A DNA stretch of 64,000 bases from NCBI GenBank assembly GCA_977016875.1, contig CDRNST010000001.1:806001-870000 (forward strand), given 5' to 3'. Positions 1 to 30,499 of this stretch are shown here, piece after piece (position 1 is the stretch's first letter; each line of letters starts with the position of its first letter). Both the position numbers and the translations under genes were made by a program. Below the pieces are notes generated by a model. The model saw only the letters and a program-made list of their open reading frames with translations, ran no database searches and was not told the origin of the DNA. The DNA is from Pavona decussata (taxonomy: Eukaryota).

Positions 1-1349
1 TTATGATCTGCCGCCTCTTAAAGAGTCCATTTGTTTATCCCGCCGTTAGTCGCCTTGCTCTTTCTCCCATTGTTGGAAGGCAAAATTGGACGAAATTAGA
101 AAAATAAAACTCCAAGGGAAATAATGAACGTGGACCGAAAATATGGGCTCAAAAAACTGCTCAGAAACCATTAGTCTGCCTATTTAGCTTCAGCTTAAGT
201 TAAACTGCGTGTCAACACTGCAAGGAATCAATGTCTTGCAAAACATCAAACCAGCAAAGTTTTGTCATGAATATAATCGCCTATTCTGAGAATAACCAGT
301 CCTTTTATTTCATTGCTGTTTTTTTGTTCGTTTCACAACGTTAAGTGAGCAAAACGTTTCCCTTCAAGAGGAAAAATTCAATGTTCTTCGCGCCGGATCA
401 AAGTAAAATGATTTCACTTCAATATTGTGATGATGTGCCAGTCGATTTGTTTCTCCCGCTAGTAGTCGCCTTGCTCTTTCCCCGCTGTTGGTTACAAAAA
501 CTGCCTTTGTATTTTGTCGTCTTCAAAAATTGTTATTTTTCTTTCTAAAACGCAGTTGGCGATGCAACTTCCCTACGAAAAAACGCGAGTTGAGTGTGGA
601 ATTTCACAATGGCTTACATAGAGGGGCGGACGTACGTATGCACGGTCGGAAAGTGACGTCATAGCCGAAGCCAAAATTTTTCGCATTTATGGGTTTACCA
701 AAACCTCTAATCAATTAAATGGGGAAGGCCCGCGCGGAACTCCGCTATGAATTTAATTTTCTTGTGTTAAAAACAATATTTTACTCGCGCAATGTTACTT
801 TTACCACTCAAAAATAAAGCTCATATCTTTGCGCAAAGTATTCGATTATTAGTTATCCAGGAGGCAGGGCAAGATGGACGGTTGACAAACCAGGAAAAAA
901 AACACAAAAAATCACGGATGGTATGATGTTAATATCCTACTGTCTTTACTACTAAATAAAAACGTTTGATAACAGACTCACACTCTCTGTTGATTATGGA
1001 CTAAGAGTAAGGGGAATTGTTGGTTGCATGTGACGTCATGGCGGCTTTGTTGCTGTACAGGAACAATAAGATTTTTCTCCTCTGGGACTTAACTTCCATT
1101 TTTATGCAATCTACATGAACAAATTTTCTTTTGTTTTGTACACCAACATGGCTACAATGCAAACCACCTATAGCTGTTAGATTTCTCTTTTTAGGCAAAT
1201 TTTGGGAGACGTATCTTCAAACTTTCTGTGATAAACGACAACTTAAGAGCCATCCTGTATTTCAGTAACTCCAAAAACCTTTCATGAGAGATTCCTGGTA
1301 ATAATTGTACTTATTCCTATTCCGGAGTAGGGTTAATCGAACGCACCCT

Positions 1350-9600: not shown

Positions 9601-9789
9601 CATTTAGGATGTTTTGCTATAAGCAGAGACCATTAACACTCAGTCTACGTCACGCGTGACCAGTTTTTCCGACATTGAAATGAACATTCGAATTCCTTTT
9701 CTTAACTCATTCATTGCGGAGCTTGCGAAGCAATGGATGAGTTTTTGCAGAGATGGGCAAAACGGCGTTAGCAAAATCTGCGTAGACGG

Positions 9790-9862
9790 ATGTGACGTCG
9801 TTAGCGAAAATAGCGGAAGTGACGTAAAACTTGGTTGGATTTGAGCAACCGCTGACCAATAA
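9790..9862 (+). promoter_or_regulatory. Putative internal promoter of the element
   Basis: Cluster of TGACGT (CRE-like), CGGAAGT (ETS-like) and CCAAT motifs just inside the left TIR. A GTAAGT donor at 10148 suggests a spliced 5' leader. Confidence 0.35.
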
Positions 9863-10703
9863 GTCAACTTGCCACGAATAGCAAACAAAACAAGCCTAAT
9901 TAAAGATTGCAAAACACCGTGATTAAATGATTGCAAAACACCGTGAGGGAATTTATATTTTTAAGGTGGGTATTCAGTAAATAAAATTAGTCCAAGACAT
10001 TCTTTTTACTCCGAAAATGAGCCCGCGTACGTACCGTCCCCTCCAGGGGCTGTTTTTGTCCATTGGGTCTCATCGCCTCGTGTTCCGTGCCAGAGAAGGA
10101 AGCCATTTTTGGTAGGAATATTTGACTCTCTTTCACACGTCATTTCGGTAAGTAAATTCTCTCTGTTGACGATTATTTCATTTGCTTTAAAACTTACAAC
10201 ACATACATAAAAAGTGAAGCGACCTACAATCTGGCTAAATCTGTTTTTACAGCGCAAATTTCGATCAGGTTCCACGGTCGCGCGTACATGTGTAATACAG
10301 ATTGCCGTACAAGGCCCAGCTATCAAACTGGCAAACAAACTTACCTTAAAAACTGTTAAGATGCAGATTTATGGTGTAATGCAAAGCTTTATCAGCTACA
10401 TACAGGAGAAGTTTAACTCCATCGCTTGTAATGTACGTTCGTTTCTTTGCCTTTGTTGGTACCAAAACGATGATTCACAAAGTCAACTTAATGATAGTGG
10501 ACCGAAAACTCTTCCACTAGGATGTATATGCAGTGACGAACACGCTGACAAACAAATCAAGGAAACAATGCAGGTACATGTAAATAAACAAATGATTAGA
10601 AGATCTCGCTTTCACCTATTTATCAATTCAAGCCAGCCCCGTAAAATTTGCAAGTCGAGAGACAGAGCCCTCTCGAGAATACTTGCAATGCAATTAAAAC
10701 GCT

Positions 10704-11830
10704 TTGCAAAAGAGTAGAAAAGTGAGACAGTCATTGCGAAAACATGCCCTCAAAATCGTTCCAAAGTCATCGAAACTCCATGAATATCTCAGCAGAAAAA
10801 GTCATGTGTACCACAGGCTAACTTATGACCTGTTTTGCATCACACATAAATGCAAACAGTCCAAACAGTCTGTAAAATATAGCTACGGTGCTAATCAGTG
10901 CCTTTATTTAGTTTTTGTGCAAATCGGAAGCCCTAAACACAAGAAAGTTCCTGTGGTTAGTTACATTACCAACATGACTGGTTTAGCTCGATTGAAATGT
11001 TCCAGATTAAAAGCATTATGGGTGTTGAGTCGTATTGTCTCACTTAGTGGTGATGTAGAGAAAAATCCTGGCCCGACCAATCAGTGCAATGAAAACAGAA
11101 ATGCAAATTGCCTATCTGTAGCCAACCCAGTCTCATTACTAGAATCGAGATTGTCTCAAGTTGGTAGAGTTGCTATTGATGTTGGAGGTGCAGGCGATTG
11201 TTTCTTTCATGCTATATCACATCTTTTATCACATCAGTTGTTTGGGACTCCCGACTACCATTTGCATATACGAAGCCAAGGAATGCAGTATTTATTGCAT
11301 AACCCAGAGCTGTTTATAGAAAGCAATACTGAACGATCATGGCAGGATTATCTCAACGATATGTCAAGAGAAGGAACATGGGCTGATGGAATAATAATTC
11401 AAGCAGTTGCTAATTGTCTTAATCTGACAATCAACATAGCAGAATCATTTGAAAACTTTTCTCCACTAACAGTTATCCATCCAGTCAACACTCAGAGAAA
11501 TTCAACCCAAGTTTTTATTGGTCACAAAGGAGAATGTCATTATGTTTCTACTGTAAATCTTTTAAATTTGCAATGTAACAGACAAGAACAGGTGGCAAAT
11601 GATTATTTTTATAAAGATCAACAGTTAGTTTATGCAGTTAGAATTGATGCTGAACAAGCAAAAGCAAAACAAAAAGCATGTGAGAAGGATTACATCCAAA
11701 GCGAGAGACAAAATACTGCTCATACGGAAATGGACAATGAACAAGCAAGAGAAAAACAAAAAACACGCAAGAGGCATTACATCCGAAAAAAGAGGCTAGA
11801 TACTGCTTATACAGAAATTGAAAACGTTAA
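10704..11830 (+). pseudogene. 5' part of Helentron polyprotein: 2A-like peptide + OTU-type cysteine protease + basic/coiled repeats
   Basis: LSGDVEKNPGP (11043-11075). OTU motifs DVGGAGDCFFHAIS, WADGIIIQAVAN and IGHKGECHYVS. The ORF is cut at the TTAA of the inserted element (11827-30). The true start is unclear; overlapping ORF 10214-10717 may be frameshifted N-terminus. Confidence 0.8.
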
Positions 11831-14800
11831 GAGGGAATGTCTACTAACACCGAGCGAGGGGTGGCACATGATAAAAAATGAAAGTCCTTCACAAATTGAC
11901 TAAGGATACCCTATGGAAGCTCTAGTGACGTGGTGGTTTTGATTTCTCGGAATTCTTTTTTAAACCCAGAAAATTTGAATAAAATCTCTCCGGGCCCAAG
12001 TGTCTATAAAAGCACTCAAAATAGACATGTCCCATACCTTCTCTCAACTTCGCTCTGTTTAATTCGCATAGATAAAATACCTCATTTTAAGCTTGGAAAT
12101 GTGCAGTTGAAGTGTTTACGAATCGTTTGAGGCCAATAATAGATCTCTGCTTTAGTTTTGAAGGTCATGGGGAAGGTACCGAAAGTTACTAAAATTGGCT
12201 CAGTCGAAATTCTCAATTTGGCGCACTTTTTCAGGAGAGAGTTTCCCTACCCGGTAAAACACCGAATCACTTGAAATTTAGAATTCTTGATTGACTAAAT
12301 GCCGTTCTAAAACCAGGTTTAAAAATCAATTTCGGGCTTTCTATCAGCGCTGAGAACTAACGCTCTCAAAATCCCGATAATTGCAACATTATCTGTCAAC
12401 AACTGTAAGCGATAAAGATGTTTCTGTCAAAATCACCGAAGACTTTTGTGATTTTTCTCTTGTTTCCCTCAATATTACGATGGACCAAACAACAGAAAGC
12501 TCATATTTAGCTCACCTTGAATAAGATGTCATCTAAGTATCAGTTTCTTCGCTTAATGTACCATACAAAGCCATCATAGCTCGAAGGGTTGATAATTGAT
12601 CTCCTTCAATGACTAATGACTTCTGGTATTGCATTCACGTCACTTGGCAAATGCCACTGAATTGAAGGGGCAAAAATCCTTTGACAGTAACAAAACCCTG
12701 TCGGCTCATAGAAAATATTAACAGAAATATATAATTTTAAAGTTCTCCACAGTCATCTCAGAAACCGCCGGACTTTATAATCTTCCGTCTTCGACTGTTT
12801 TGACTGTACTTGTTTCGGTCACGCAACGGCTTCCTTCGGAGTGATTGGGTTTTCTTACATACAGTGTATGGCCAAAATCGAAAAAAAAAAATAAATAAAT
12901 AAATAAATAAAAATCCAAACCTCAGGGCGTTTGAAACTAGTTCCTTTAAAGTTATTTGAACATGCAAACGTGACTGTTCACGCATTAGCGCTGCTTTTGA
13001 ATTTCTCCGTGAACAGTGATGTTCGATTCAGGTTGTATATTTCACGACGGTCATGGCGTGTGCTTGAATGGTTTATTCAGCAAAAATAATTACTTGAATG
13101 ATGTTTTCACGAGAGGAAATTGAACAGATACCGGTATAAGGTGATATAAGAAAATTGTGACTTAACGAGAACTTTTTTAGTTTCTCAACCAGAATGACGT
13201 TCGTTCTTTTCGCATGTGTCGGTTTGCCAAAATAACAGCTATAAACAAGATAAAAGATATACAGACAGATAAGGAGTTCCGTGATCACTGATGATAACAG
13301 TACACAATGTACCTGAAAAAGGGTTGGGTGCATCAATTCTCCGTTAACAAGATCTTTAAAAAAGTTCAGTTTTCTGCTTAATCGTTAATTTTCTCTGATC
13401 TGTAGCACTTATTATTATTATTTTTTAATGTGTTTATTTTAGTTACAATAAGAGAGGATGAAGCTCTCTTGGTTACAATGATCTGTTGTGTTCTTATAAA
13501 CACCGCCGTTGCTCTGATTGAAACTGATCGTCACGCACCTGATGGACACACATTGATGATGCTGGGACGATTACCAAATATACAAAATTTCCATATTACA
13601 AAACACTCGTAGTTTTTTGTATTTACGCTGCGTTTAAAGAATTTTCTGATAATTTCAATCATTCTTACGGCCATTTCGGTTGTGACCGGGTGAAATCAGC
13701 GTGTGAGATTTGCGGATGCTTCAATTATCTGACAAGGTGGTCAAACAGAAAAAAAGTGTTTTAGTAAACCGTTCAAATCTTTCGTTGGTGCAACTCTAGT
13801 GCAAAACTGTTAAGACAACAACAAACTTAAAGGACCCTAGTCAGCCTCCGCCATTTTCGATGCCATCAAAATTATTGATATCGCATGGTGAAGCTAAATC
13901 TTATTGCTTTGTGTTCCGGAAAGTATGTTTCATTATCTTTAGTAGTTTCACAGTGATTTCGTTCATTTTGACATGCTCCAAATAAAATATAATAGCCAAA
14001 CCTTCGTATATAAACAAAAACAAAGGCGTGGCTGGCTAGGGCCCTTTAATGCATACATCGTGAAATTTCACAGGACAAATACGTTTCGGGACAACACTAG
14101 CAATGTTCGAATAAGTGATGTTTACTCCGAAGTTGAGCTTATCCTAGCGCGCGCGTGATTCTTTCTTCCGCTACATTTCTGTGTAGACCATTATAGACTT
14201 GCCACAAGTCGTCTTCTTAATATACACCGAAAGAGTGACCAACAAGGCGACGGAGTCGTGAGCCGAGCGCCTGACTGGACTCCCACGAAAACGGACTACC
14301 TATCCGCATCTCAGTGGGAAATTGGCCGGTGCAGAGGTGGTAACCAATGACGAGATCCGCATGGGCTCTCTTAACATACTGCAATACTGACATGGTGAGA
14401 AAAGCAGACCGTGGGATAGGCAAGTCGGAGTCCATAGCTTTATTGCGACAAACCGGTGTACTGAGTCCATTGGGCTCTTGAATTGGTAAGTACACCTTAA
14501 TTTTGTCCTATACGCTGGCCTCCTCTGTAACTGATTTGCGAACAATGGGCCAATTTAGTTTGGAAACAGTGCAATCCAAACGTAGCCTGGACCCACGCAG
14601 TCGTCATTTTAGGGGACATCGCTGGTGTTTTGAACTTTGAACTAATCACTACATAAATCAATAAGTGAGCTTAGCAATCTTTTGCATAGGTATATGCCGT
14701 GACCGCGGGCCTATCGCGGAAGCTACCGAGGCGACACCAAAAACAGTACCAGAAAACTGTAAGCATTGGATCGAGCCCGAGAGGATTGGGGGGGGGGGGG

Positions 14801-17691
14801 TGGGGTGGGGGGGGGGTTCTACTCATAGTACACAGTATGTGTGAAACGATAATAAGAATTAAAATATAGGTGTGAAAGGCTCGGCCGCAAAAAAATATAG
14901 GAGCCCCTTAATTTGGCTCGTCCTTTTGCACAGTTCAGATTCAGAACATAAAATAACTTAATTATATCACATCAAGAGCTACATTTAGGTCTATAGACGC
15001 ACTAAATTCGTACTTGGCATCTACAGACGTCAGCCCTATTAGGTCTCAGCTAAAACGCTCATCGGAAAATGAGAGCGGACGAACTTTGATGGTGGACAAG
15101 GGGTGGCTCCTGTCAGGTACATGCCAAGAAATAACACCACATGAGACAGGCGCCCTCTCTCGCGCAATACGTTCACCAGACACGCTGCGTCGCCTAGCTC
15201 TCTAACATTCTGATGTCGCAGCACACCGTTGATGTGCTAAACGAACTTAAAGAGGAGTTTGCATTGACTGTGAAACAAGCAAAGGCAAAATCTTTACATC
15301 GTCATGGAAGGCCCATTGACCGGCGCTCTATCAACCAAGATGCTGCAAGGGTCGACGTCCTAGAGCGACCTGAAGAGTAATCAATTTTGGTTGTCCGAAA
15401 ACCAAAGTGCGCGATTCAGTATACATGGTATATTCCTTCGCATGTCAGCATAGCTCAAATCCTATCTAGAACTCCTTTTTTTTTTCTTTTTTGTCTTCCG
15501 GAGACGGAGAGGGGGAGGGAATCCCCCTCCATAGCTTCACAAGTATAAAAGGCATGGCAATGTCGGCTATGAGACTCCGAGGAGAGATAGTACGTTCAAG
15601 CATGTCTCCTCTGGGGTTCGCAACGGATAATGACGTCATATGACAGCTAGACGGGATGGAAGCGGTTGTCATGTGGCCGACACCAGCACTCCCTAGAGCG
15701 CGAGACGAGAAGTCCTCTGACAGAGCTTCAGTCGACTATGCGGAGAAGCTTGCGGGACAAACCACGCTCTTACCGGTGGTCAGCATAGTCAGTAACAGAG
15801 CAACAGACTAGATATGATATGGATACTCAAGTCAAGTGCGTTACGAAGGACTCGGTTCTAGTTCACAAGGCCTATTTGACAGCAAACCGGAAGTAAAGCA
15901 GACCCTGTATGCGACACTTGCAGTGACTACATCGTGAAACAAACCATTATTTAATTTATTACAATGTATTGCTGTGACAAATGATCCAGTTCAAGATCAA
16001 TGATCGATGTGTGCTGAGGTAGCTAGCAACCTTAACAGCAGGTTTCTTCTTGCACCTTGCTTCGAAGAAAGTACTGGTGGATGATGAACCAAAAGACGAT
16101 AACGCGCCGCTGTTCGGGAAAATGAGCACACGCTCACCCCACCCCTGCCCCACCCCTATTTTTCATTTACCATTAGGAAATTTGTATTTCCTTTGGCATT
16201 GACCTCTCAGCTGTAACAATTCGATGGAAAAAGCCATACATCGACAAACTGCATTCTCTCTTTGTCAAGGATGCGCATGTCAGCAGTGAGGAGTGATTTC
16301 TTTCTGGCTGATAAGATTGTTTTGTCCTGTCCTCAAGAGAACAGTCAGGGATGAGACCGTAGTGACTTTTGCACGAAGGCGAAAACCAAGGCGTTAATAC
16401 TTAGTGGTTCTAACAAGAAAAGTGTTCCCTAAGGTTTCACCTCATTAAAATGCAGAGTATCATACTTTAGCAAGGCTTGCTTTGTGGCTCAGTCCTTTTG
16501 GTGTGTATAGATGATAAAAACATTCGGCTATAAATCATCGGTCCTGTCCACACTTTGGTAAAGATTACATTGTTTTTAATTTGTTTTTCGTTTTCAGCAT
16601 GTCAGGACACACGTTTCCCGTGTGTTTTTTACCCAACATAGTCAAACCTAACGTCACGTGAATTTAAAAAGCGTGACATTTTATTGCGTGACTGATATGC
16701 CATAAACAGAGTTGAATTAATCCACGAGTGCTTTCGCTTCAAGTAACGGATCTCGAAACGACAGCTCGAAACCAAAAAAATCGTTTCGAGATTCAAAGCC
16801 CGAAAATCAAACTCATCTCTATTTTAAACGATCTTCAAGTCGAAAAGAAGTGGTCCGATGGTAAGTCATTTGAGTTATTGTCGTTCCATCGCAATGAGCG
16901 ATGATAATTTATTCTGTTGACTTCACACATCAAGATGGCCATATAATAATGAAAGGATACAAACCCAACTAAATATCTTATTTAGACAATGCCTTATTGT
17001 AAGTAGTTTGCGAAACATGACCTTTCACTGGTGGTTTAAAGCCGAATGCCGAGGTAAACTAAATGAAATTTCAATAGTTTTTCTTAGTTTGGTTGCAGTC
17101 ATGTGCAGTTTGTTTACACGTTGATATTGCGATTTTCGTGATTCTGAGACCGCTAATGCTCGGCGCTGGTAAAAAGCCCGAAGCTATTTTTTAAACCTAG
17201 TTTTAGAACGATACTTCCTCATTCTATAATTCAAAATTTGAAGGGTTTTAGTGTTTTACCGGATCGCGAAATTTTCTATTAAAAAAGTGCGCCAAATTCA
17301 GAATTTAGAGGGAGCGAATTTTTGAGATTTTTTGTGGCTCCTCGTGACCAGGAAAATTCATCCACTGAAGTATTTTTGGACTCGGATACTTAATAAACTC
17401 TTTAAAAGCAAATTTTTAAGAAAAAAACTGGGTTTTCTTTGATGCAAATTGAACATAACGAAGTTTACGAAAAGGTGTGAACCATGTTTATTTCACGAGC
17501 CCACGCTTTCACGAGTGGCCGTCACTGTTTTTTCTATTTTTTCCGGTTTAAAAAATATATTTCGGGAAAAAAATCCCACCACGTTTTTTAAACTAGTATG
17601 GAGTATCTCTGGACGGAATATGCAAAGTTTTGATTTTTTCATCATGTGCCACTTTTTTATGATTTCGCTCGGTCTTAGTAGACATTCCCTC
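11831..17691. mobile_element. 5.86 kb TTAA-specific DNA transposon, Kolobok-like, apparently non-autonomous
   Basis: TSD TTAA (11827-30, 17692-95). Termini GAGGGAATGTCTACTAA / TTAGTAGACATTCCCTC. Imperfect inverted similarity continues ~600 bp (e.g. aatttggcgcacttttt near 12215 vs aaaaagtgcgccaaatt near 17282). A purine-purine start after TTAA fits Kolobok rather than piggyBac. No long ORF inside. Confidence 0.85.
13831..14045. mobile_element. TTAA MITE (Kolobok-type), copy 1
   Basis: TTAA-aggaccctagtcagcc...ggctggctagggccct-TTAA; close homologue at 24227-24451. Confidence 0.85.
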
Positions 17692-17695
17692 TTAA

Positions 17696-20690
17696 GAGAC
17701 GAAAAACACAACCAATATCTGAAGCAAATAAAAACACAAAACGCAAGGCTTATTTATATGAAACAGCTAATGCAAAAGAAACGGGAAAATGCTGAATTCA
17801 GAGGCAAAGAAAATAAAAGAAAAAGAGACAAAGCCAAACTTAGAAAAGGTAATACAAACACTAATACTTGTAATGCAACAGCAAAAAAAATGTCAACTGA
17901 CAATAATAATGACACAAGTAACAAAATAATAGACCAGTTTCACAAAAATATCAGGTGTGGTCCTGAATACATATGTACCTGCTGTGATCAATTGTGGTAC
18001 AGGTCATCAGTCACAAAGTGCAATGTAAACAATTATAGCAAATGCCAACAAAAACTCGTTAAGTCTTGTATTACTGGGCTAAAAAGTGTTGATGATACTG
18101 AATGGATCTGTAGCACTTGCCATTCAAACTTAAAAGAAAGTAAGTTACCCCAGTGCTCAAAAGCAAATGGTATGAGTTTCCCTAAAAAACCTGCAGTACT
18201 TGATTTGACTCCATTGGAGGAAAGACTTGTATCACCACGCATCCCTTTCATGCAAATTCGTGAACTTCCAAGAGGGGGTCAGCTTCTAATTCATGGCAAT
18301 GTAGTTAATGCTCCAAGTGATGTAAATTCAACGGTCCACATATTGCCTAGATCGATCAGTGAGTCACAAACTATTCCAATAAAGCTAAAGAGAAGTCTGA
18401 GTTACAAGCACCATTATCAGTTTCAAAATGTTAGACCTATGAAAGTATTAGAAGCAGCCAAATATCTTGTCAGTACTAGTGAGTTGTTTAAAAGTGAAGG
18501 TATTGAAGAACAAGATTCCTGGCAAAATTACAATACTTCTCATATAAGTGAACAAGATTGGCAGGAATTTTTTCAAGGCCATGATAACTATAAAACAAGT
18601 AGCAAAAATGATGAAGATCAAGGTAGTAATACTGCAAGCAATATAATTGACATTGGCACTAACATGAGTTCTGAACCAGAAAGTAATGAAAATGATAGCT
18701 GGTGTGAGGTTCAAGAGCGCCCTTCTGGAGTAACAGACACTTTATTGCAAGAACCAGATATTTGTGATAATTCTGATAAAATTTTAAGCTTTGCTCCAGG
18801 TGAGGGAAACAAACCATTAGGCATTTTTATGGATAAAGATTCAGAATTTTTGTCTTTTCCCACAATATTTTGTGGCAAACGCAGAACAGACAGCAAAGAT
18901 AGGGAGATACCGTTATCATACAGTACTGTTGCTAAGTGGGAATTGCGATGCCAAGACAGGAGAGCTGCAGAATCAGTCCCTAACTTATTTTATAAACTTA
19001 AAAAACTTCAAATTAAACAAATCCAGGATACTGCTTGCATTTCTTTACGAAAGTGTAAAACAAAAGGCAAAAAGTACACAGCAGGTGAACTTAAGTCAGA
19101 AGATTACATCAACAAACTTGTTCATCTTGATGAAGGTTTCAGAGTTCTTAAGAATTTACGAGGGAGCCCAGCATACTTCCAAAAGTGTAAGAAAGATTTA
19201 TTTGCTATGATTCGTCAACTTGGTAACCCAACCTAGTTCTGTTCTTTCTCAGCTGCAGAAACAAGGTGGACACATTTGCTTAAGGCTTTAGGAAGACTCA
19301 TTGAAAAGAAGGAATACACAGATGATGATATAAAAAACATGAGTTGGCAGCAAAAATCAAATCTTATTCAAAAAGATCCAGTAACATGTGCAAGAAACTT
19401 TGACCACATGGTTCAACTTTTTATTCGTGATGTTCTAAGAAGTGATATGATCCCAGTAGGAGATGTTGCTGATTATTTTTATAGAGTTGAATTTCAGCAA
19501 AGGGGCAGTCCTCATATCCATGCTCTCTTTTGGATTAAAGATGCACCACAATCTGGGAAAAGCTCTGAAGAGGAAGTTGTTAATTTTGTAGATAAATATG
19601 TCACTTGCAAAAATGCCAAAAGTATTGCTATGGAAGATCTGGTAAATTTACAAATACACAGGCATGCAAAGACATGTAAAAAGAATGGGCATCAAGTTTG
19701 TAGGTTCAACTTTCCATTGCCACCCATGCAGAAAACTATGATATTGAGACCACTTGATGATTATGATACTCTTTGTCCAGAAAAACAGAAGTACATTAAA
19801 GAAAGTGCAGAAAGAATTAAGACTGAACTTGACATGATGAAATTTGGGGAAGATATCAGTTTTCAAGAATTTCTTGACAAATTGCGACTGACAGAGGAAA
19901 ACTACGTATTGGCTTTAAGATATACTTTAAAACGCGACACTCTCTTTTTGAAGAGAACGCCCTCAGAGATAAGGATAAATAACTACAACACTACACTATT
20001 GAAAGCTTGGCAAGCAAACATGGACCTGCAATATGTCTTAGATCCCTATGCATGTGCAACATATATCTTAGCTTATATTACAAAAGGGCAGAGAGGAATA
20101 AGCAGACTTCTTGAAAAAGCAACTGATCAAATTAAATCTGGTAATCAAGATATTGCTAACAAAGTGAGACACATTGGCAACAAATTTCTAAATGCTGTAG
20201 AAATTAGTGCTCAAGAAGCCGCCTACTTGTTATTACAAATGCCAATGAGGAGATCAACCCGTGATTTTCAGTTCATCAATACTTCAAATCCAGATGAAAG
20301 GGCCTTTCTACTAAAGTCACTTGACAAACTAAAAGAACTACCAGATAATTCACCCGAAATAGAGTCTGACAACCTTATTAAGCGTTATCAGAGAAGACCA
20401 AAGCAGCTACAAAACTTCTGTTTAGCTGATTTTGCTGCCTGGTTCAATTGTGTACGCGAAAGTACTAGTGATAAAGTACCACTTACAAGCTCAAATGATT
20501 TTGTGCCAGAAACCCATTCTGATGACAATAATGATGACGAGATTCATAATACTATTGATGATACAAGTGCCAATAAAAATGAGTACAACATGAGAGGTGG
20601 CATTAAACTTGTAAAACGATGTAGGCCCAAAATCATCCGCTCTGTCAGATTTCATAAAGATAGATCCACAAAATTTTTACAGAGAACAGC
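17696..20690 (+). pseudogene. Helentron polyprotein, middle: Cys-rich Zn finger + Helitron-like N region + HUH Rep domain
   Basis: GPEYICTCCDQLWY...WICSTCH; LTPLEERLVSPRIPF; YRVEFQQRGSPHIHALFW (HUH motif 2); QIHRHAKTC; CRFNFP; YACATYILAYITK (catalytic Tyr motif). Lesions: 4-bp duplication at 17750-57, TAG at 19234-36 (LGNPT*FCSFSAAETRW), frameshift near 20662. Confidence 0.9.
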
Positions 20691-20692
20691 TT

Positions 20693-22462
20693 ATGCTTTA
20701 TACTCTATGGCGAAATAAAAGTACTGATTTGTTAGCAAATTGTGACAACTATGCAGAAAGATTTGAGCAACTGAACCATGTTATCCTTCGTAACAGCCAG
20801 CAATACGAATGCCATAACAAAATGTTACAAAAAGCCATAGACGATTTCAACAATGATTACTGTGACAACCATGATAATGTGGCACCAAATACACAACACA
20901 ATAATGAACAAGACTGTGCACAAAAACAAAAACCAAGTGAATTGTTTGGCTGTTTTGATCCAGGGGACAATAAGCTTCATAGCCAGTATGATTTGCTTGA
21001 TGACATTGGCATATTTCCTAGATGCAATGACCATGAAGAATTAGTTATCAAGCGTTTATCTGATTCTGAATATTATAAGCTGGTACGCTCATTAAATGAA
21101 AAACAAAGGCAGTTTTTCTATCATGTACTACACTCTATCAAAACCAGTGACAAGCCTCTCAAACTCTTTCTGTCAGGTGGTGCAGGTGTTGGTAAATCAA
21201 CTGTTACAAATGCATTGTATGAAGCACTGATTCGATACCTCAATAGTATACCTGGTGAAAATCCAGATGAGGTTAAAGTACTTAAAGCAGCCCCTACAGG
21301 GAAAGCAGCCTTTAATATAAATGGAAACACTTTACATTCAACTTTTAAAGTGCCAGCCAATAAAGGATTTGACTACTGTAAACTTGATAGTGACAGGCTC
21401 AATACATTAAGAACAAAATTGTCCAAACTAAGAGTACTATTTATTGATGAAATATCTATGGTGGGAAGTGGTATGTTTAATTTCTTGAATTCAAGGTTAC
21501 AAGAAATAATGGGCACAAAGGAGCCATTTGGAGGAATAAGTGTCTTAACTGTTGGAGATTTGTTCCAATTAAAACCTGTTTTCGATAGCTGGATATTTAA
21601 AAATCCAAACACTTGCTATGGTGCTTTAGCAACAAACTTGTGGACAAATTACTTCACCTTATTTGAGCTAACTCAGATAATGAGGCAAAAAGATGATAAG
21701 CAGTTTGCAGAGCTGCTCAATCGTTTAAGAGAAGGAAAGCATACCAAGGACGACATAGTAACCTTGAAACAAAGATGTCTTCATAATATGATTTCAGAAG
21801 TAAATAACTTTTATCCAAAGAATATCACACATCTGTTCACTACAAATGCATCTGTCAATGCCCATATTAACAATATATATACCTCATCAAATACTCGTAA
21901 AGCACAGATAAAAGCAATAGATATTGTCATTGGAGACATTTCTGATGAGCTAAAAAAAGAAATGAAAGCAAAAGTACCAGATGACCCAACTAAAACAATG
22001 GGCTTATATTCACTTGTCCAAATAGCAACTGGTGCAAAATATGATTTAACAAGCAATATTGATGTTACTGGTGGTTTGACAAATGGTGCAGAATGCATTA
22101 TAGAAAACATAGATTATAGGGTTGAGAACTCTAGCAGACCCAGTATAATATGGGTGTCTTTTTCTGATCCAGGCATTGGCAGAAAACAACGCCAAGAAAA
22201 CTGTCATCTTTATCATAACAAAAATATTGAACAAAATTGGACACCAATTTTAGAGGTCACAAGACAATTCAGAATTAACAAGAAAACCCAGGTACAAATT
22301 CTTCGCCAACAATTTCCATTAAGACCTGCAGCTGCGAAAACTATTCATCGTTGTCAAGGTGACACTTTAGATGCAGCAGTTGTTGATTTCCCATCTTCAA
22401 CAAAGGAGCATATGCATTATGTTGGCTTAAGTCGCGTCTGAAACAGTTCAAATCTGTATATC
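20693..22462 (+). pseudogene. Helentron polyprotein: PIF1-family SF1 helicase
   Basis: Walker A GGAGVGKS, AAPTGKAA, Walker B FIDEISMV, GDLFQLKPV, ELTQIMRQKDD, QFPLRPAAAKTIHRCQG, YVGLSRV. TGA at 22439-41, after which the frame continues (NSSNLYIMNLNE). Confidence 0.92.
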
Positions 22463-23202
22463 ATGAATTTAAATGAGCAGAAGATAAAAGTAAATGAAAA
22501 TGTAGCACAAGAAATGGAAAGGCTAAGAACTGAAACAACTCTTTCTCCGAGAGCTTCGCTTCAAAATACTGGTTTATCACTATTCACTGTAATATTCCAT
22601 AATGTTAGATCTTTACATTTACATATTAATGATGTGCAAAGTGACTACAATATGCAAAAAGCTGATGTTAACATTTGTGTGGAAACTAGGCTTTGTACAG
22701 CAGATATAAGTGATGACTACAATTTACCAAGATTTCAGCTATACAGAAATGACTACAGCCAATCAAATGTAAGAACATCCTATGGTACTGCTATGTATGT
22801 AGCAAATAATATTCTTTGTTCACAAATTCCATACAGATTTAACTACGGCCAAGTAGAAATTACAATAATGGTTACCAATCATCTAATTAACACCTGCATG
22901 TCATTGGTATCTATCGCTCTAAGAGCAAAGTAACTACAACAAAACTTGTTGATGCCCTAAAACATCTTCATGATACAAAACTAGTTAATGTTGTACCTAC
23001 CCTTGTTCTTGGAGACTTTAATATAAACTTGCTCGAAGATACATCAGAGAAAAAAGCATTAATGACACAGTTCACAACTGATTATCGCACACTGATAGAT
23101 CATATTTACACAAATGTACCACATCTTGTAACATCATCAGGTGTTCTTGAATCATATTTCAGTGATCATAAACCAATTTTTGTATCTTTGACATCTAATT
23201 GA
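22463..23202 (+). pseudogene. Helentron polyprotein C-terminus: AP/EEP-family endonuclease
   Basis: FHNVRSL, CVETRL and YRND...YGTAMY; after a frameshift near 22890 it reads HVIGIYRS...LGDFNINL...TTDYRTLIDHIYTN...SYFSDHKPI; stop TGA at 23200-02. Confidence 0.85.
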
Positions 23203-23299
23203 GACATTGTACTTTTTCATCCCATACTATTCCCTAATCAGTTGCTAAGGATAAGTAATCGTTAACGCAATAAAGAATGGAAAACTGCACAAAACCAAT

Positions 23300-24416
23300 A
23301 GCGCTGTGCACTAATGACGTCACGAGATTTTACACCCCGTCGAGACTCAGACAAACAAAGTCGAATTCTGTAAGAGATGTAGGGAAGAACATGTGAATGG
23401 CGAGCAGTTCGCTTCGGTCTTTAACCGACGAAGACGACGTTCCTAGGTCTAAATTCAAAAGAGAACCAGAGGAGTACACAGTTGAGCAACTAAAACGGTG
23501 GTTAAAGTGCAGGGGCTTGAAATTAAGCGGTAAACGCGAGAACTCATCTCTATCATTTCTCAGGAATCGGAGATCCACAAGATTACAGATTAGGATCGAA
23601 ACCGCGGTCTTGCCTCACCATTGCCTAAAATGCCACAGAATTTACTAACGGCTGAATGACTCGTAGCAGCCCCTGGCCAGAGCAACACAGAAGAATTGCC
23701 TCAGTAAAAGGTGTGAGCAAAACACAGGAGGAAAATACTAAGTTCCCGCAACATAAACACAAACCTCACAGTTACAGAGCGGAGCGGAGCGATAAAAAAA
23801 CACAGCTGTAACAAAAGCGGCCTTTAGCCCACAAATTAACGCATTGTATAGCTTTTAAAGAAGCTATAATGCTAAAGAAAGGATCAAGAGAAAAATAACC
23901 GTGATGAGTAACACAACATCTTGCCACAAAAGCAAATAGCCGGGCGCGGCAATATAAAAGCTGCAAGATAATGATTATTACACGGTTCAAATCCTATCCT
24001 TCCAAAGATAAAAAGAGAGGCTATACTGCCGCAAGACTCACTGAAATCAGTGTCTTGGGGCAGTATAGCCTCTCTTTTTATCTTTGTAAGGATATGATTT
24101 GAACCAAATGCCACAAACGGCATAAGAACGATAGTCGCTACACAAAAAACAGCAAGAGGTTAATTAGATAGAACACAAAACCCAGACATGACCTTTGAGA
24201 TAAAAGTACAAAACATGCGACATTAAAGGACCCTAGTCAGCTTCCGCCATTTTCGATGCCATCGAAATTATTGATACTGCATGGTGAAGCGAAATCTTAA
24301 TGCTTTACTGTAAGTTATGTTCCTGAAAGTATGTTTCATTATCTTTAGTAGTTTCACAGTGATTTCGTTCATTTCGACATGCTACGAATAAAATATAATA
24401 GTCAAACTCTCGCATA

Positions 24417-24455
<39 letters not shown>

Positions 24456-25067
24456 GCACGTGGCTTCGTTCAGTTACTATCCCGCAAATCCTCCAAATCA
24501 TAGATGGCATTTAATAAGAAGAAAATACAGCGCTAAAAGAAAATTTACAGGGAGCGCCGCTCATACGAGAGAGGGCGTTCCTTAAAAGACATATGTACTC
24601 GTTACAGCAAAACTATAACTGAACATGGCTAAAACACGCAAGTGGGAGTTGCGCAGGCTTATCTTCTTTCCTTTTTACACTGGTTATGTTTTACTCCGTA
24701 AAGAAATCCCGCGAACAAGCAGCTAGCCTACGCTTGCACTTCGCGATATCTTGCGTTGGTTTCGGAAATTGAATGAATACTTTCTTCCCTGGTTGCTCAA
24801 CCTTTTTGAGGGATTTCGGCCACTTGTCAGGATACCTCACGTCTGTTTTGCATTCACCCCAACAGCAGTGTTTGGTGGTTACCATTTCGGTCCATCTAGG
24901 ACGCTAACTGCGCGATTTCACCAAGTTTTTCGCTTTTTGGTATTGCTATGGCAGTACTCGCTCATACATTTTCCTTTATCACATCCCAATGTTTGTCTGA
25001 GTCTGTGCGGGGGGTCTTATGGGATCTCATGTGACAAAATCTATTTTTAGTAATAGTGCACAGCGCT
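23300..25067. mobile_element. Internally deleted ISL2EU-like (PIF/Harbinger-ISL2EU group) transposon
   Basis: TIR agcgctgtgcacta / tagtgcacagcgct with AT on both flanks (23298-99, 25068-69). Convergent gene stubs: a SAP-domain start on + (23397.., YTVEQLKRWLKCRGLKLSGKRE) and a THAP-like start on - (24885.., KHCCWGECK...FIQFPKP...AAC). Confidence 0.7.
24227..24451. mobile_element. TTAA MITE (Kolobok-type), copy 2
   Basis: TTAA-aggaccctagtcagc...ggctgactagggccct-TTAA; homologous to 13831-14045. Confidence 0.85.
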
Positions 25068-26698
25068 ATTCACATTATGCACAACATTGGGGGTGTTTAC
25101 CAAACATCCCTATCATGGTAAATGGAGTCCTTACAACAGGTAAGATACAGAAATGCACTGTAGAGCACTGTAGAGCACTGTAATTGTGGGTGCAAAAGCC
25201 AGTTCATTTCATGCCTTTATGATAATAAATTTAACCTTATTTCTCTTTTAAATTTCAGCTGAAATGTTCAACTACAAATGAGCATACTGTCCAAAAACAA
25301 TCAATGGATGACAACAGTATCGTGGTGCTGCTGATTCCTTGTTCAAGTATATTGGTGTACAACTCACATTATCACTGAAGGATAATGCTGACACAGATGA
25401 AGCAAACAAAATACAAGTTGAGCCCATATTAACACAAAGAAAGACTAATGTTGTGTCCAAACACCTGAAAAAAAGATCAATAAAACTCAAGATTGTGAGG
25501 ATCTCTCCTAGCAACCTCAACTACTGCTCAAATGAGAAACAAACCAGCACCATTTAATCCTCTGCAAAAGAGCATATGCAGCACATGGAAGATTTCATTA
25601 CCTTGAATGCACTGTAATTGAGCAATAATGAACACTATCAAGAACTCATTTAAGAAACAATGTGCCCAATGCAGTAAGAATGTCACACTGCCATGACTTT
25701 TCCAGAAGGTTTTACTTGTTATTGAAAATAACTTCACAATATGTACATCCTGCTCAAATGTCATAAACAATAATTACAGAATCAATCCATTGAGCACACT
25801 GAAAATTCCTGTAGGATAAAATATCTGGCATTGAAAGATAATCATGAAGTAAACATGATTGTTTTAATTTTCCCTAATTTACAAACTGAGTGCAAAGGCA
25901 ACCATATACTACTACATGTAATATAAACTAAAAAATTCATGGCTTCATGCCATACATAGAAAATGCTCCTGAACTCAACAGGACTAATCATGTAGCTCTG
26001 ATAAAAAAAAATTTATACCAAAATTTTTGATCATTCAATCCTTCGTTATAATAAAGCTTTCACAAAAGAAAATGCCAACAAATATACCTTGCTGCATCCA
26101 AAATTACAACAGCATTCAATAAGAAATTTTCATATACGTATTTGATGATATTCATTTACTTTCTGCATTTTACATGAAATACTTTAATGTACAGTATGAT
26201 ACTCTGTTGCACTTTGTATATCAGTTACATAGCATGTCTAAAAGTAAATAATTATATTGTTTGACAAGCTAACCACTGATGTGAAACAAAACTAAAGAAA
26301 TAAATAAGTAAATAAATAACAAAGATTAATTATATACAGTGTAGCTCTACATAAAAAACACAGAAAACCGCAACTGTTTTTTTCTGTGGTGGTTGTTGTG
26401 CATTCAGCACTACTATGCAAACGACAAAACAAAGTAAATCAATAGAAATTTGTTAAAAAATCCAATTGCCAATGAAAGACCAGTTGCTTATTTACAAACT
26501 GTGGAGGACTTAAACTGGGGCCACCGAAGGCAGCCCCAAGACATAAAATATTAATTTTACATACATTGCTTTTCGATTGCCCGAAATTTCTCTACATCCC
26601 AGGCCAAAACGCGCTTTGATTCCATGGTAACGCGAAAAGGAAACCCTACGCATGCGCATAAATAAGCTTTACCTTCGGACCTCGTGCTTTCGCGCAAT

Positions 26699-27835
26699 AT
26701 GGCATCTAGAATGTTGAGTTCAGGCAGTCCAACTAAGCGAAAATACAAAGACATAGAGGGATATATCCATACCGTTTCAGAGATCAAGATTCCGAGCTCT
26801 GGAAACAGGTATTTTGATTTTAAAATCCAAGAAAAGGAGGAAGTCAGTCGCGTCGTTTGCTTCTCGCCAGACAAACACAAGAAGTTGAAAGATCAACAGA
26901 CCTCGAAGACGCCTGTTAGAATATTGACTGTTAGTCCACAGAAGAGCAGATTTCAACCTGATGTCGAAGAATATAAGTTGTATAACTTTTCACAAGTGCA
27001 AGATGCAAAGAACTTGTCATTCCGCTGGAAAGATGTAACAGGACAAGTTGCTAAAGACCCTTCTCTTCAGCAGATACTGCAGCACTCGACAGTTGGCGAC
27101 ATTGTCTCGGTTAAAGCTAGAGTTCTTTCGAAAGGACAAACCACGACTGTAACTTCACGTTCCACAGGCAAAGAGGTGAAGAAGTGTGAGCTCGTTGTAA
27201 GTGATGGAACTGCTGTAATTACTGCCACCATCTGGGAGGATGGGATAGAAACGGTTGCACAAGGGCAGGCGTACGTATTTGGAGATGTGAGAGTGGGCTA
27301 TTTTAATAAGACGTATCTCCAGTGCGCTCAGTCTTCAACTATTTCACCATACAACGAAGAAATTAAGATCTCTGAAGCGATGGCATTGGAGGCTGAGAAA
27401 CTTAAGCCTAAAGAAACAAAAAGTGAAGAGATTGAGGGCAGAATCCTGGCAGCTGATATCAGCAAGCTGTATGTTTGTGTAAATTGCAATGGGAGAATCG
27501 CAGCAGCGGACGATAATGACCCTGAAATGGCGAAGTGCACTTCTTGTGGACAGATGATGCTCGTGTCACTTTTTTCAGCAACGTTGTCGGCTAATTTCTT
27601 ACTTGGTGATTTGCAAGGTGAGAAAATAGGACGTTACTACTCACCAAGTGCCCCTCTTAAAGAATTCTTTGCTAAACTATCATGTACCGAGGGATACAAT
27701 ATAAAAGAAGATGTAACAAAACTAAATACAAAAATGATATACGCAACACTTCTGCCTATAAAAAAGATAAAATTTTGCATTTCAAATGCTGATAAAATAA
27801 TTTTGTCTATGCAAATTGTGCAGGACAATGATTAG
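26699..27835 (+). CDS. Intronless RPA70-like OB-fold ssDNA-binding protein (transposon-associated), 378 aa
   Basis: OB-fold signatures (IEGYIHTVS...YFDFKIQ...RVVCFSPDKH; DIVSVKARVLSK...ELVVSDGTAVITATIWE...YVFGDVRV) and a C-terminal CVNC...CTSC zinc ribbon as in RPA70 DBD-C. ATG at 26699, preceded by CGCATGCGCA and CATAAATA motifs. RPA genes are known Helitron/Helentron accessories. Confidence 0.75.
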   Translation: MASRMLSSGSPTKRKYKDIEGYIHTVSEIKIPSSGNRYFDFKIQEKEEVSRVVCFSPDKHKKLKDQQTSKTPVRILTVSPQKSRFQPDVEEYKLYNFSQVQDAKNLSFRWKDVTGQVAKDPSLQQILQHSTVGDIVSVKARVLSKGQTTTVTSRSTGKEVKKCELVVSDGTAVITATIWEDGIETVAQGQAYVFGDVRVGYFNKTYLQCAQSSTISPYNEEIKISEAMALEAEKLKPKETKSEEIEGRILAADISKLYVCVNCNGRIAAADDNDPEMAKCTSCGQMMLVSLFSATLSANFLLGDLQGEKIGRYYSPSAPLKEFFAKLSCTEGYNIKEDVTKLNTKMIYATLLPIKKIKFCISNADKIILSMQIVQDND

Positions 27836-28187
27836 AAGTACCAAGACTTTTGTTAAAAAATGTATTGTTGTTACTTAGACTTGCATTGTAAATCACAACT
27901 GCCTCAATGTTGAGGTAGTTGGCAACTGCAAAAACATTGCATATTCTTTTTTCACCTAAAATTTAGTTTCAGTTTTATATAAGATTACCCCTGGTAGATG
28001 AGATATACCAGTAGTAGAAAAATGTTCTGTTGTTGTTACTTAGACTTGAATCACCACCACCTCAATCTTGAGGTCATAAAAACTACACGGAGATGGCATT
28101 AACTTTTGTACATTTCACTATGCGTTGAAGATTATTGCCTAGAGCATTTAGTTTCAGCTCTATATAAGATTAGGTGAGATATACTTA

Positions 28188-28672
28188 CGGCCTCTTCATA
28201 TGAGCCCAGTAAACCAGGCTGGCTTGGTTTCCGAGATCTCGCCTCGCCGCTCTTTTCTTTGTAAAAATATCGATGTGTTCATATCAGAGGCTGAGCAGGC
28301 CCAGTAACCGAGATCTCAGTTTTTGCAGCCCACATCACGGTAACCAGGATGAAAATTTTCCCATATGAACACTCCAGCCCAGTGACAATGATGAAAGTTT
28401 TTAAACAAAATAGCTTCGCTCTCAAAACATAGCGGCCAACAAAGTGGCATAGTTTTGATCTTGGAAGTATTTCCACTTTACAAGTATGTGAATTAGCTTT
28501 ATTAGTAAAGTTACAAGGGTAGAGAAAGCTTTGAAAGTTGCAAACAATACAAATTTATGTTCCAGAATTTTGATTGTCTTTCTTGAATTCATCCCGGTAA
28601 ACCGGGCTGAAAATTCCCATATGAACACACCCCAGAATTCGTCCCGGTTACCGAGCTAATATCAAGAGGCCC
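28188..28672. mobile_element. PIF/Harbinger-type MITE
   Basis: TTA TSD (28185-87, 28673-75); ends cggcctcttcatatgagc / gctaatatcaagaggccc. Confidence 0.65.
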
Positions 28673-29864
28673 TTAGAATGTCACTATACTTGCAAAGTTT
28701 CCCTATCAAAGCACATGTCACAAAACTAAATACAAGCAAGATATGTGCAACACTTCTACCCATAAAGAAGATACAATTTGCCACAGAAAAATTAACACTT
28801 CCTTGATTGTTGTTAAGAAATGCTGTGTTCTTGTTACTTACAATTAAATAACAACCTCAATCTTGTAGTTGTAGGAACTGTATAGAGGTTGCATTTCCTT
28901 TTGTCGATTTCCACTATCTGTTGCAGATTACTGCTAGCATTTAGTTTCAGTTCTATGTAAGATTTGATCAGGTATACCTGAAAGTATGTATAATTGCATA
29001 TTTTCCTATTTAATCACTGCATCTGAGTGTTAACTATGTTAATAAATAAAGTTAAAGAGCAACTTTCAAACATTTTGTAGATTAAGCTTGTTAACATTAA
29101 GTATTGTTCAATTTGAGGAAAATAAAGTTAGATGTTGTGTTAGGATATAGCATTCTACTTGCTTGAACAGGTTTTGCAGTGAATACTCTGTTTTGTGTCT
29201 CCTTCCTCAAACTCCCATTCATGGGACAAAAATAGCAAAATATTTTCTATCTCGTAAAACCCCAATATCAATTAATCAACCCAACAACAAATTTTTTTGT
29301 AATTACTGCTAGAGACCTTAATGTTAATCTCGATTTTGGTTGCATGGGATAAGGAGTGTAGCTTCAACATCTCCAACAACTGATCACATTTTCACCACAA
29401 TTTTGGTTATATGGATGAATGAGTTAGCTCTTAGGAGCCTTTGATTTAATGTCTGGTATTTGAATGGAATCTTGAGAAATCTTTCCGATATAGACGCATT
29501 AACTGAACAAAAAAATTCAAAACACTCGGGAAACGATTGTTAGTTTTGAACTACCGAGTGCCGTACTGTAAAGAAAAATTCATAGCTTTATACCGTCAAT
29601 AAACTCGGGTAATTTCTACAGGAACTCTGAAATCTCGCCGGCGATGTTCAAAACTGACATGTAAATTTCAAAACTCCATTCAAGTTTCAAAAATACCGGT
29701 CACGCGTGACGTGGATTGACTGTAACAGAAAAGAGAAAGTGTCAAGTTTTACTCCTTCAATTCTAGATCTTTCCAACTTCCATTTCTAATCTGTGCTAAT
29801 GTTCATTACTTTTCATTCTCGTTCCCAGGTGGGACCCTGGGAACGAGTCTGCAGTGTCCTCCTG

Positions 29865-30103: not shown

Positions 30104-30499
30104 CTGTTCTTTTTCCACCGCTTGCATATCAAACGTTTCAACAGTTACTTACTTTTTAAAGCAAGGAGCACCAATTGACCTTACTTACAGTAACATACTA
30201 CAAAGACCTTTTTCATAAATGGCGTCCGATAAATTATTATTTTGTTTCATTAAAATAAGCCTTACTAGCCTCGTCAGCATGTGCAAAATTCAAAAGAATT
30301 TTTACTCTGAAATGAGGTTAGTAGGGCTAATTAACATATATTGAAAAGAATAATAAATCGGCCGCCATTTATGAAAAAGGTCTATGAACCTTGGTTTAGA
30401 CTGGCAATGTTTTTACCAGGATAACAGTACGATACGAAAAACAGGAAAAAACATATCATTATTAATTATTCTAAAGGCCGCCGTTTGGTTTACCGTAAC

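Follow-up and report, generated by a model that had tools for sequence, protein, structure and literature searches.

The question raised by this locus is whether the genes of a rolling-circle transposon travel as cargo within the inverted ends of a cut-and-paste element, or whether two unrelated transposons lie one inside the other. The window, by which we mean the whole stretch of DNA analysed (64,000 nt of the coral Pavona decussata; assembly GCA_977016875.1, contig CDRNST010000001.1, positions 806,001 to 870,000, forward strand), carries such genes between a pair of inverted ends at 9637 and 29722. The preliminary description of the locus offered both readings: an undescribed hybrid class, or a Helentron that had landed in a non-autonomous TIR element. 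The second is what the data show, as judged from the ends of the sibling copies and from MITEs that lack the cargo; the first does not stand. Almost certainly, we are dealing with two ordinary, unrelated transposons of the coral genome that have become nested, a Helentron (HLE2) inside a MITE of ~340-350 bp and of Tc1/mariner type. The finding is an ordinary one, and a new hybrid TIR/rolling-circle class is ruled out.

Inverted ends and coding content

The inverted ends are present as first described: CACTCAGTCTACGTCACGCGTGACC (9637-9661) and GGTCACGCGTGACGTGGATTGACTG (29698-29722) match at 22 of 25 positions, the inverted repeat can be followed to 57 nt, over which 74% match, and TAA is found on both flanks. 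The palindrome GTCACGCGTGAC occurs within the window at these two ends only, where ~0.01 matches would be expected by chance. Domain matches also bear out the coding content that had been proposed, namely OTU, DUF6570 (E 1.6e-17, with profile hits in both the window and the sibling copy C88), Helitron_like_N/Rep, PIF1 and the OB fold of RPA, together with a 2A-like motif, DVEKNPGP, within the OTU ORF (~11052-11075); the endonuclease part of the polyprotein is seen as a domain in the intact C88 sibling. The genes and the nested insertions are arranged as follows:

10704..11830, + strand: OTU cysteine-protease ORF (PF02338, E 7e-12), interrupted close to the 3' end by nested insertion 1
11831..17691, no strand assigned: nested insertion 1, 5.86 kb, non-coding, TIR GAGGGAATGTCTACTAACACCGAGCGA, absent from the C88 sibling
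17995..23199, + strand: remnant of the DUF6570-Rep(HUH)-PIF1-AP-endonuclease gene, with the same domains as the sibling, broken
23300..25067, no strand assigned: nested insertion 2, 1.77 kb, TIR AGCGCTGTGCAC, AT on both flanks, absent from the C88 sibling
26684..27835, + strand: RPA-like single-strand-DNA-binding ORF (OB fold; PF16900, E 9e-7)

Insertion 1 is bordered by a TTAA duplication (11827-11830 and 17692-17695) and contains no ORF longer than 92 aa; smaller MITEs lie inside both insertions. Three nested insertions had been counted previously; comparison with the intact sibling yields two. The Rep gene remnant bears frameshifts near 20663-20700 and near 22888, as well as stop codons and, in the alignment to the sibling, a gap of 38 bp. 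Interrupted by two nested insertions and disabled by two frameshifts and by stop codons, the Helentron copy in the window is dead.

The Helentron family and its boundaries

The sibling that provides the intact reference (C88:2676286-2688443; 12,158 bp) is colinear with the window copy and has all three frames open: an OTU frame of 630 codons, a DUF6570-Rep-PIF1-AP-endonuclease frame of 1749 aa and an RPA frame of 389 codons. The 1749-aa frame unites the Helitron_like_N (E 3.5e-27) and PIF1 (E 1.1e-29) matches in one protein and presents an HUH motif (SPHIHAL), a tyrosine pair (YILAYITKG) and a Walker A motif (GGAGVGKS). Additionally, Exo_endo_phos is matched at residues 1585-1739 with an E value of 5e-8, above the curated cut-off, and the helicase matches that of Helraiser (PDB 7LCC) at E 3.5e-20.

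The family comprises 17 members, the window copy and 16 others that share its exact ends at 92-100% identity (mostly 97-100%). One is the apparently intact 12.2-kb autonomous copy, one is the dead copy in the window, ~14 are short derivatives, most of them ~1.8 kb long and the longest 2.6 kb, and one is a 6.2-kb copy consisting mostly of unrelated sequence. The short derivatives are non-autonomous and probably stem from the C88 sibling; the family as such may be uncatalogued for this coral. The terminal features of the window copy are listed below:

9701..29445, + strand: Helentron (HLE2) copy, ~19.7 kb with its two nested insertions (unit length ~12.2 kb)
9704-9714, + strand: 5' terminal inverted repeat AACTCATTCAT, after the 5' T run, conserved in all copies
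9704..9743, + strand: 5' hairpin holding AACTCATTCAT, with a 14-bp stem in which 9704-9717 pairs with 9730-9743
29415-29425, + strand: 3' subterminal inverted repeat ATGAATGAGTT, the reverse complement of AACTCATTCAT; both repeats are in all 17 copies
29427-29438, + strand: 3' stem-loop GCTC-TTAG-GAGC, after ATGAATGAGTT and followed by the tail CTTTGAT (29439-29445)

All 17 copies have the 5' end (T)nAACTCATTCATTGCGG... and the 3' end ...GGATGAATGAGTTAGCTCTTAGGAGCCTTTGAT. The preliminary description had found no canonical Helitron ends inside the inverted repeats; canonical Helentron ends are in fact present at ~9697-9702 and at 29445/29446, and are common to the 16 other copies. These ranges express the uncertainty of the two boundaries, which arises because both junctions fall within T runs. 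The 5' hairpin is a predicted fold of -10.8 kcal/mol (z -4.3), which none of 200 shuffled sequences equalled. The 4-bp stem at the 3' end is likewise the predicted fold, albeit a weak one (-3.1 kcal/mol, z -1.6) that does not differ significantly from shuffled sequence. The bases 29415-29445, which span the repeat, the stem-loop and the tail, are identical in 17/17 copies; as these copies are recent and near-identical, the conservation of the stem-loop carries little independent weight.

A T run is found at the 5' side of every copy and a T follows the 3' end in 15/17, the flanks being otherwise unrelated. At the paralogous empty sites of two other copies (C23 and C44), the Helentron is seen to have entered a T run, of which no part is duplicated; for the window copy, the empty site is the MITE itself. 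By its predicted domains, inverted repeats, stem-loop and T|T insertion, the element is classified as a Helentron (HLE2).

The MITE that owns the inverted ends

The left 300 bp of the locus are composed of two parts: bases 1-64 are matched by many short copies at 86-93% identity, separately from the remainder of the query, and bases ~63-300 are matched by the 16 Helentron siblings at 97-100%. The right end is similarly divided, with its break at 29446/29447, and query bases 125-400, taken from this end, returned 2138 first-look candidates at 82-93% identity. In the 602-Mb genome, the repeat has more than 1000-2000 such first-look candidates. The MITE repeat is absent within 1.4 kb of all 16 Helentron siblings, and the joined left end, MITE plus Helentron, is found in the window only. 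The two pieces belong to one MITE copy:

9637..9700, + strand: left part, ~60-64 bp, TIR CACTCAGTCTACGTCACGCGTGACCAGT, its end ambiguous within the T run 9697-9700
29447..29722, + strand: right part, ~276 bp, containing the right TIR (29698-29722)

In intact MITEs, the 276-bp part follows directly on the left 64 bp, such that the sequence is contiguous across the break: these copies read ...TTCCTTTTTGTAATGT..., whereas the window reads TTCCTTTT[C TTAACTC...CTTTGAT]TTAATGT. With the Helentron excised, the MITE in the window is 1 nt shorter than its family consensus, the G of which is missing. At the 5' junction, the window has TTTTCTTAACTC and the siblings have TTTTTAACTC; because these differ and both elements are T-rich there, the junction can be placed only to within a few bases.

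The consensus TIR of the MITE family is CAGTCAATCCACGTCACGCGTGACCAGT, and intact copies are flanked as tTA|CAGTC...GACTG|TAa, that is, by a 2-bp TA duplication in the style of Tc1/mariner. Among 28 distinct copies, 20 have the flanks TTA...TAA, and a 2-nt direct repeat (TA) is present at 21 as against a 3-nt direct repeat at two. Moreover, at one paralogous empty site (81% identity), 2 nt of the joined flanks are missing. The TAA/TAA of the window, which had been taken for a 3-bp target site duplication, reflects a duplicated TA within a TTAA-like context in which one base on the left has changed. Two characters only, its duplicated TA and its CAGT termini, place the MITE as putatively Tc1/mariner-type. 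It resembles Tc1/mariner-type (Stowaway-like) MITEs in being ~350 bp long, non-coding and of high copy number, with ~28-nt TIRs starting with CAGT and a TA duplication; it differs from Stowaway-like MITEs generally in the strong T-TA-A context of its insertion sites.

The affinity to CMC/EnSpm (CACTA) elements that had been suggested is not upheld: the left end in the window happens to read CACT, but the consensus of the family has CAGTC in place of CACTA, and the duplication is of 2 bp (TA), not 3 bp. Assignment to either PIF/Harbinger or CMC from a 3-bp TAA was considered and rejected, as the left flank reads TTA and the right flank TAA, which do not form a direct 3-nt repeat. A piggyBac-type TTAA duplication was also rejected, the flanks being TTA|...|TAA and not TTAA|...|TTAA.

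These observations point, almost certainly, to the following order of events. The MITE, with its TA duplication and CAGT... inverted ends bearing GTCACGCGTGAC, inserted first; the Helentron later entered a T run ~60 bp inside the left end of the MITE, at a T|T position and with no duplication of the target. The MITE was thereby split into pieces of 64 and 276 bp, which mimic terminal inverted repeats around the Helentron, and the latter then decayed through two further nested insertions, frameshifts and stop codons. The relative divergence fits this nesting order, with the MITE the older and the Helentron the younger: identity to the respective family is 82-93% for the MITE halves and 97-100% for the Helentron. 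The Helentron itself presumably moved by means of its own ends, comprising the 11-nt 5' terminal/3' subterminal inverted repeat, the small stem-loop and the tail CTTTGAT, and, by analogy with other members of its class, through the action of the Rep(HUH)-PIF1-AP-endonuclease protein.

Alternative readings and related elements

An accidental composite might still be mobilised in trans, as a 20-kb unit, by the transposase of the MITE. Both MITE ends are fairly well kept (22/25 within the pair, ~90% to the family), and such an incipient MITE-capped composite, if real, would provide a rolling-circle transposon with a cut-and-paste mode of spreading in addition to its own. We consider this very improbable. 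The genome holds no second copy of the composite, whose ends lie 20 kb apart, a distance quite unlike the ~350 bp of active members of the family; with 82-93% identity, the MITE family itself seems old; and the Helentron genes are dead, which leaves the preserved ends as the sole point in its favour.

An equally slight probability attaches to a chimera, in which the assembler joined the Helentron into the MITE at shared T-rich repeats. Both elements are repeats, and neither of the MITE/Helentron junctions is bridged by the short-read contigs from four public runs, because unitigs break at repeats; those covering the 5' part of the Helentron all begin at 9702. The nesting at this locus consequently rests on the assembly. 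On 9300-10300, the public contigs reveal no locus-specific empty allele, but none of them spans the junction there. A misjoin, however, would require one MITE to be broken at a single point, with its halves abutting precisely the 5' and 3' ends of a complete Helentron. Furthermore, certain features occur in the window copy and in none of its siblings: it carries two nested insertions and frameshifts of its own, along with a 5' C variant. These favour a real, old locus over a chimera.

The weakest reading is the hybrid class itself, with Rep, PIF1 and RPA as the cargo of a cut-and-paste TIR element defined by the 25-bp ends and a 3-bp duplication: the ends at this one locus are real, symmetric and bordered by TAA, but the joined form occurs once in 602 Mb, and we give the reading practically no credence. 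We have dropped it because what the preliminary description had named as evidence against it is what we find: other Rep-helicase copies, as well as non-autonomous ones, end at internal Helentron-type boundaries, with no TIR within 1.4 kb; the TIR pair occurs elsewhere without the Rep cargo, as the high-copy ~350-bp MITE whose interior is contiguous; and the 3-bp duplication fails to recur.

With the locus read as a Helentron within a MITE, its importance beyond annotation is small, and the supposed hybrid TIR/rolling-circle class falls away as a false lead. The case is a caution for transposon annotation, since a MITE split around a large insert imitates both TIRs and a target duplication. For a recently active coral Helentron family, the ends are now given at base level, along with the target rule and a count of the copies, and a high-copy, TA-duplicating MITE is defined.

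The systems closest to the coral element are the Helentrons/HLE2, rolling-circle transposons, together with HINE/DINE-1, which are derived from them and non-autonomous (Thomas et al. 2014, PMC4067079; HELIANO, PMC11417382). The published hallmarks of Helentrons/HLE2 are inverted repeats of 12-16 nt, a stem-loop that follows the right repeat at the 3' end, insertion at T-T and boundary T strings, together with an endonuclease domain, OTU and RPA ORFs and DUF6570 (PMC4067079; PMC11417382), the last of which is reported as an HLE2 marker (PMC11417382). The coral element shares with them the combination of DUF6570, Rep(HUH), PIF1 helicase and C-terminal AP endonuclease in one ORF, the upstream OTU ORF and the extra RPA ORF. 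Also shared are the 5' terminal/3' subterminal repeat (here of 11 nt), another short inverted repeat immediately internal to the 5' end, the 3' stem-loop after the right repeat, the boundary T runs and T|T insertion without duplication.

Canonical Helitrons (HLE1, for instance Helraiser, PDB 7LCC) have in common with the coral element the fusion of a Rep (HUH, two tyrosines) with a PIF1-type helicase; both presumably move by a rolling-circle or peel-and-paste mechanism in which the target is not duplicated. Unlike these Helitrons, the coral element does not have the 5' TC, the 3' CTRR end or the A|T target, and it does possess inverted repeats, DUF6570 and an endonuclease domain. From HLE2, nothing structural sets it apart. 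RPA is enriched upstream in HLE2 according to the HELIANO survey (PMC11417382), whereas in the coral element it lies downstream of RepHel, and the 2A-like NPGP motif of the OTU ORF is a further difference. Its short deletion derivatives, which are >95% identical to the autonomous copy, are a feature shared with HINE/DINE-1.

Ends and genes of the locus

The preliminary description placed rolling-circle machinery within inverted ends at window 9637-29722. The ends themselves are present as claimed: read directly, the left is ...gagaccatTAA/CACTCAGTCTACGTCACGCGTGACCAG... at 9637 and the right is ...CCGGTCACGCGTGACGTGGATTGACTG/TAAcagaaaag at 29722, with TAA on the outer side of each. Their 25-mers are inverted repeats matching at 22 of 25 positions, and in the repeat finder (pair I3) the match continues to 57 nt, at 74%. 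The palindrome GTCACGCGTGAC within them is likewise confirmed; it occurs at only two places in the 64 kb, namely, the two inverted ends (chance expectation ~0.01). Pfam also bears out the OTU/Rep/PIF1/RPA gene set.

Pfam domains in the window
10704-11903, OTU
17449-19236, DUF6570
19276-20718, Helitron_like_N / Rep
20693-22441, PIF1
26684-27835, RPA OB fold

A MITE in two halves

When the ends of the claimed element were searched against the genome (602 Mb, 1180 contigs; the window is C1:806001-870000), the left 300 bp resolved into two separate repeats: bases 1-64 (window 9637-9700) have many short copies at 86-93% identity, and bases ~63-300 (window ~9699-9936) recur at 16 other places at 97-100%, the two parts being joined in the window alone. 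On the right, window 29447-29722 gave 2138 first-look candidates (82-93% identity), and 29050-29446 fell, at 92-99%, on the 16 loci already hit by the left inner part. With two families on each side, joined only in the window, the inverted ends do not belong to the Rep-bearing element.

The outer pieces, of 64 and 276 bp, are adjacent elsewhere in the genome (for example, at C323:1415306-1415657, C3:644702-645040 and C161:112530-112873). In 28 distinct two-ended copies of this MITE, the lengths are mostly 326-373 bp (full range 192-491 bp) and the TIR consensus is CAGTCAATCCACGTCACGCGTGACCAGT. In the multiple alignment, intact MITEs run uninterrupted across the break (...ACATTCGAATTCCTTTTTGTAATGTCCGGTATTTGAATGG...), whereas the window reads TTCCTTTT, then 19.7 kb, then TTAATGTCTGGTATTTGAATGG; judged from this alignment, 9637-~9700 and 29447-29722 are one MITE.

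The TAA flanks had been taken for a 3-bp target site duplication, a reading that the family contradicts: a 3-nt direct repeat flanks 2 of the 28 copies, as against a 2-nt repeat (TA) in 21, and 20 copies are flanked by TTA (left) and TAA (right). One paralogous empty site (in L056) reads CACT-TA-AG, 2 nt less than the flanks when joined. On this evidence the MITE duplicates TA, in a TTAA-like context and with CAGT at its termini, which we take to be the Tc1/mariner pattern. The TAA...TAA of the window is this flank pattern with one base altered on the left, where the family has TTA/CAG and the window TAA/CAC.

The Helentron within

The ends of the inner element were aligned across all 17 copies. 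The 5' end is x-TTTTT-AACTCATTCATTGCGGAGCTTGCGAAGCAATGGATGAGTT..., and the 3' end is ...GGATGAATGAGTT-A-GCTC-TTAG-GAGC-CTTTGAT, directly followed by T in 15 of the 17; outside these shared ends the flanks are unrelated. The 5' AACTCATTCAT (9704-9714) and the 3' subterminal ATGAATGAGTT (29415-29425) are reverse complements of each other, and the 5' end is predicted to pair with 9730-9743 in a 14-bp hairpin (dG -10.8 kcal/mol, z -4.3). The 3' stem-loop (4 bp, -3.1 kcal/mol) is not significant by energy; it is invariant across the 17 copies. Paralogous empty sites for two other copies, that on contig C23 in a ~2000-copy repeat and that on C44 in a tandem-like repeat, place insertion within a T run with no bases duplicated or lost, given an element defined as TTTTAACTC...CTTTGAT. 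Window 40-405 (minus strand), 85-88% homologous to the repeat hosting the C44 derivative, was used as a paralogous empty site.

Published Helentrons carry inverted repeats in subterminal position, another short one close to the 5' end, and a 3' stem-loop; they insert into TT and have 'a string of Ts (2 to 5) on the boundaries', variable in number (PMC4067079). HLE2 elements have 12-16-nt repeats, the right one followed by the stem-loop, and insert at T-T; DUF6570 is their marker, and they also carry OTU, RPA and an endonuclease domain (PMC11417382). The inverted repeats, second 5' repeat, 3' stem-loop, T/T insertion and boundary Ts are all seen in the inner piece, which is, on its sequence features, a canonical Helentron. 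Canonical ends, said to be lacking inside, are thus found and are common to 17 copies; the MITE repeat, sought within 1.4 kb of either end of the 16 siblings, was found in none. A hybrid class, with HUH/PIF1/RPA genes carried within TIR ends, is refuted by the conditions that the preliminary description itself set, and the other suggestion, a Helentron that landed in a non-autonomous TIR element, is right. The locus is a typical coral-genome Helentron family nested in a typical TA-duplicating MITE; little is new in kind, and its use is mainly as clean annotation and a cautionary example.

In the assembly, the MITE has a single break point, occupied by a complete Helentron, and is the older of the two (82-93% identity to its own family versus 97-100% for the Helentron). 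The Helentron would have entered a T/T site in the T run of the MITE by rolling circle (peel-and-paste), driven by its own Rep/helicase; the copy would afterwards have gained two more insertions and decayed. For the 5' junction there is a margin of up to 5 bases (window TTTTCTTAACTC versus TTTTTAACTC in siblings), and taking the Helentron out leaves an aligned MITE shorter than the consensus by 1 nt, its G missing.

Over 9300-10300, neither a public contig bridging the MITE/Helentron junction nor an empty allele of this locus was found: contigs of the Helentron part all begin at 9702, and the MITE loose ends at 9694/9700 continue into normal MITE sequence of other copies. Public runs containing the sequence carry a coral metagenome label; runs X9-X13, labelled as a different organism ('organism A'), match 9702-10300 at ~100% identity without the flank or MITE of 9300-9700, and their upstream flank differs (...TCTAGTTT/TTAACTC); by sequence, this could be the family in another coral taxon, or merely another copy.

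Family members and nested elements

Helentron copies by genome-search coordinates
14 short non-autonomous derivatives: 11 of 1.76-1.82 kb, 3 of 2.45-2.64 kb
C209 copy: 6.2 kb
C88:2676286-2688443: 12,158 bp
Window copy: the 17th member

In the C209 copy, homology is confined to the 5'-most 635 bp and roughly the final 1.2 kb (pieces of 729 and 437 bp), with ~4.4 kb of unrelated sequence between. Apart from a 38-bp gap and two insertions in the window (11831-17691 and 23300-25067), the C88 copy is colinear with the window copy (96.9-100% identity). It has three open frames, of 630 codons (OTU), 1749 aa and 389 codons (RPA OB fold); the second matches DUF6570 (E 1.6e-17), Helitron_like_N (3.5e-27), PIF1 (1.1e-29) and Exo_endo_phos (5e-8). 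The catalytic motifs SPHIHAL (HUH), YILAYITKG (tyrosine pair) and GGAGVGKS (Walker A) were found. Among structures, the helicase matches those of PIF1 and, at E 3.5e-20, Helraiser 7LCC. In the window, the RepHel gene has frame shifts near 20663-20700 and near 22888, as well as stops, and the OTU frame is interrupted by the first insertion; these lesions indicate that the window copy is dead. A 2A-like motif, DVEKNPGP (window 11052-11075), lies upstream of the OTU domain; being identical in the intact C88 sibling (SRIVSLSGDVEKNPGPTNQCN; OTU frame L081, residue ~308), it is not peculiar to the decayed copy.

Many other RepHel families are present in the genome, at 71%, 47% and 33% identity to this one, several with long open frames. 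That at 33% has at least 15 loci with uninterrupted frames of ~2588 aa (for example, C339:305661-309449, C364:444133-447921 and C38:1317400-1321188) and appears to be a different, possibly currently active Helitron-like family.

The first nested insertion (11831-17691; 5.86 kb, non-coding, TTAA duplication) has a 27-nt TIR that begins GAGGGAATG, and its subterminal inverted repeats are 208 nt long (12182-12389 and 17124-17331, 77% complementary); a TTAA target points to piggyBac or a group like it. The second (23300-25067; 1.77 kb, TIR AGCGCTGTGCAC, AT on both flanks) lies ~100 bp past the RepHel-EN stop. Each contains one copy of a ~230-bp MITE (13827-14049 and 24223-24455; 92-93% identical, ends TTAAAGGACCCTAGTCAGC...GCTGACTAGGGCCCTTTAA), a third level of nesting. 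Directly downstream of the interrupted MITE, a 43-nt inverted repeat (30201-30386; 88%, arms 100 nt apart) is probably another small MITE.
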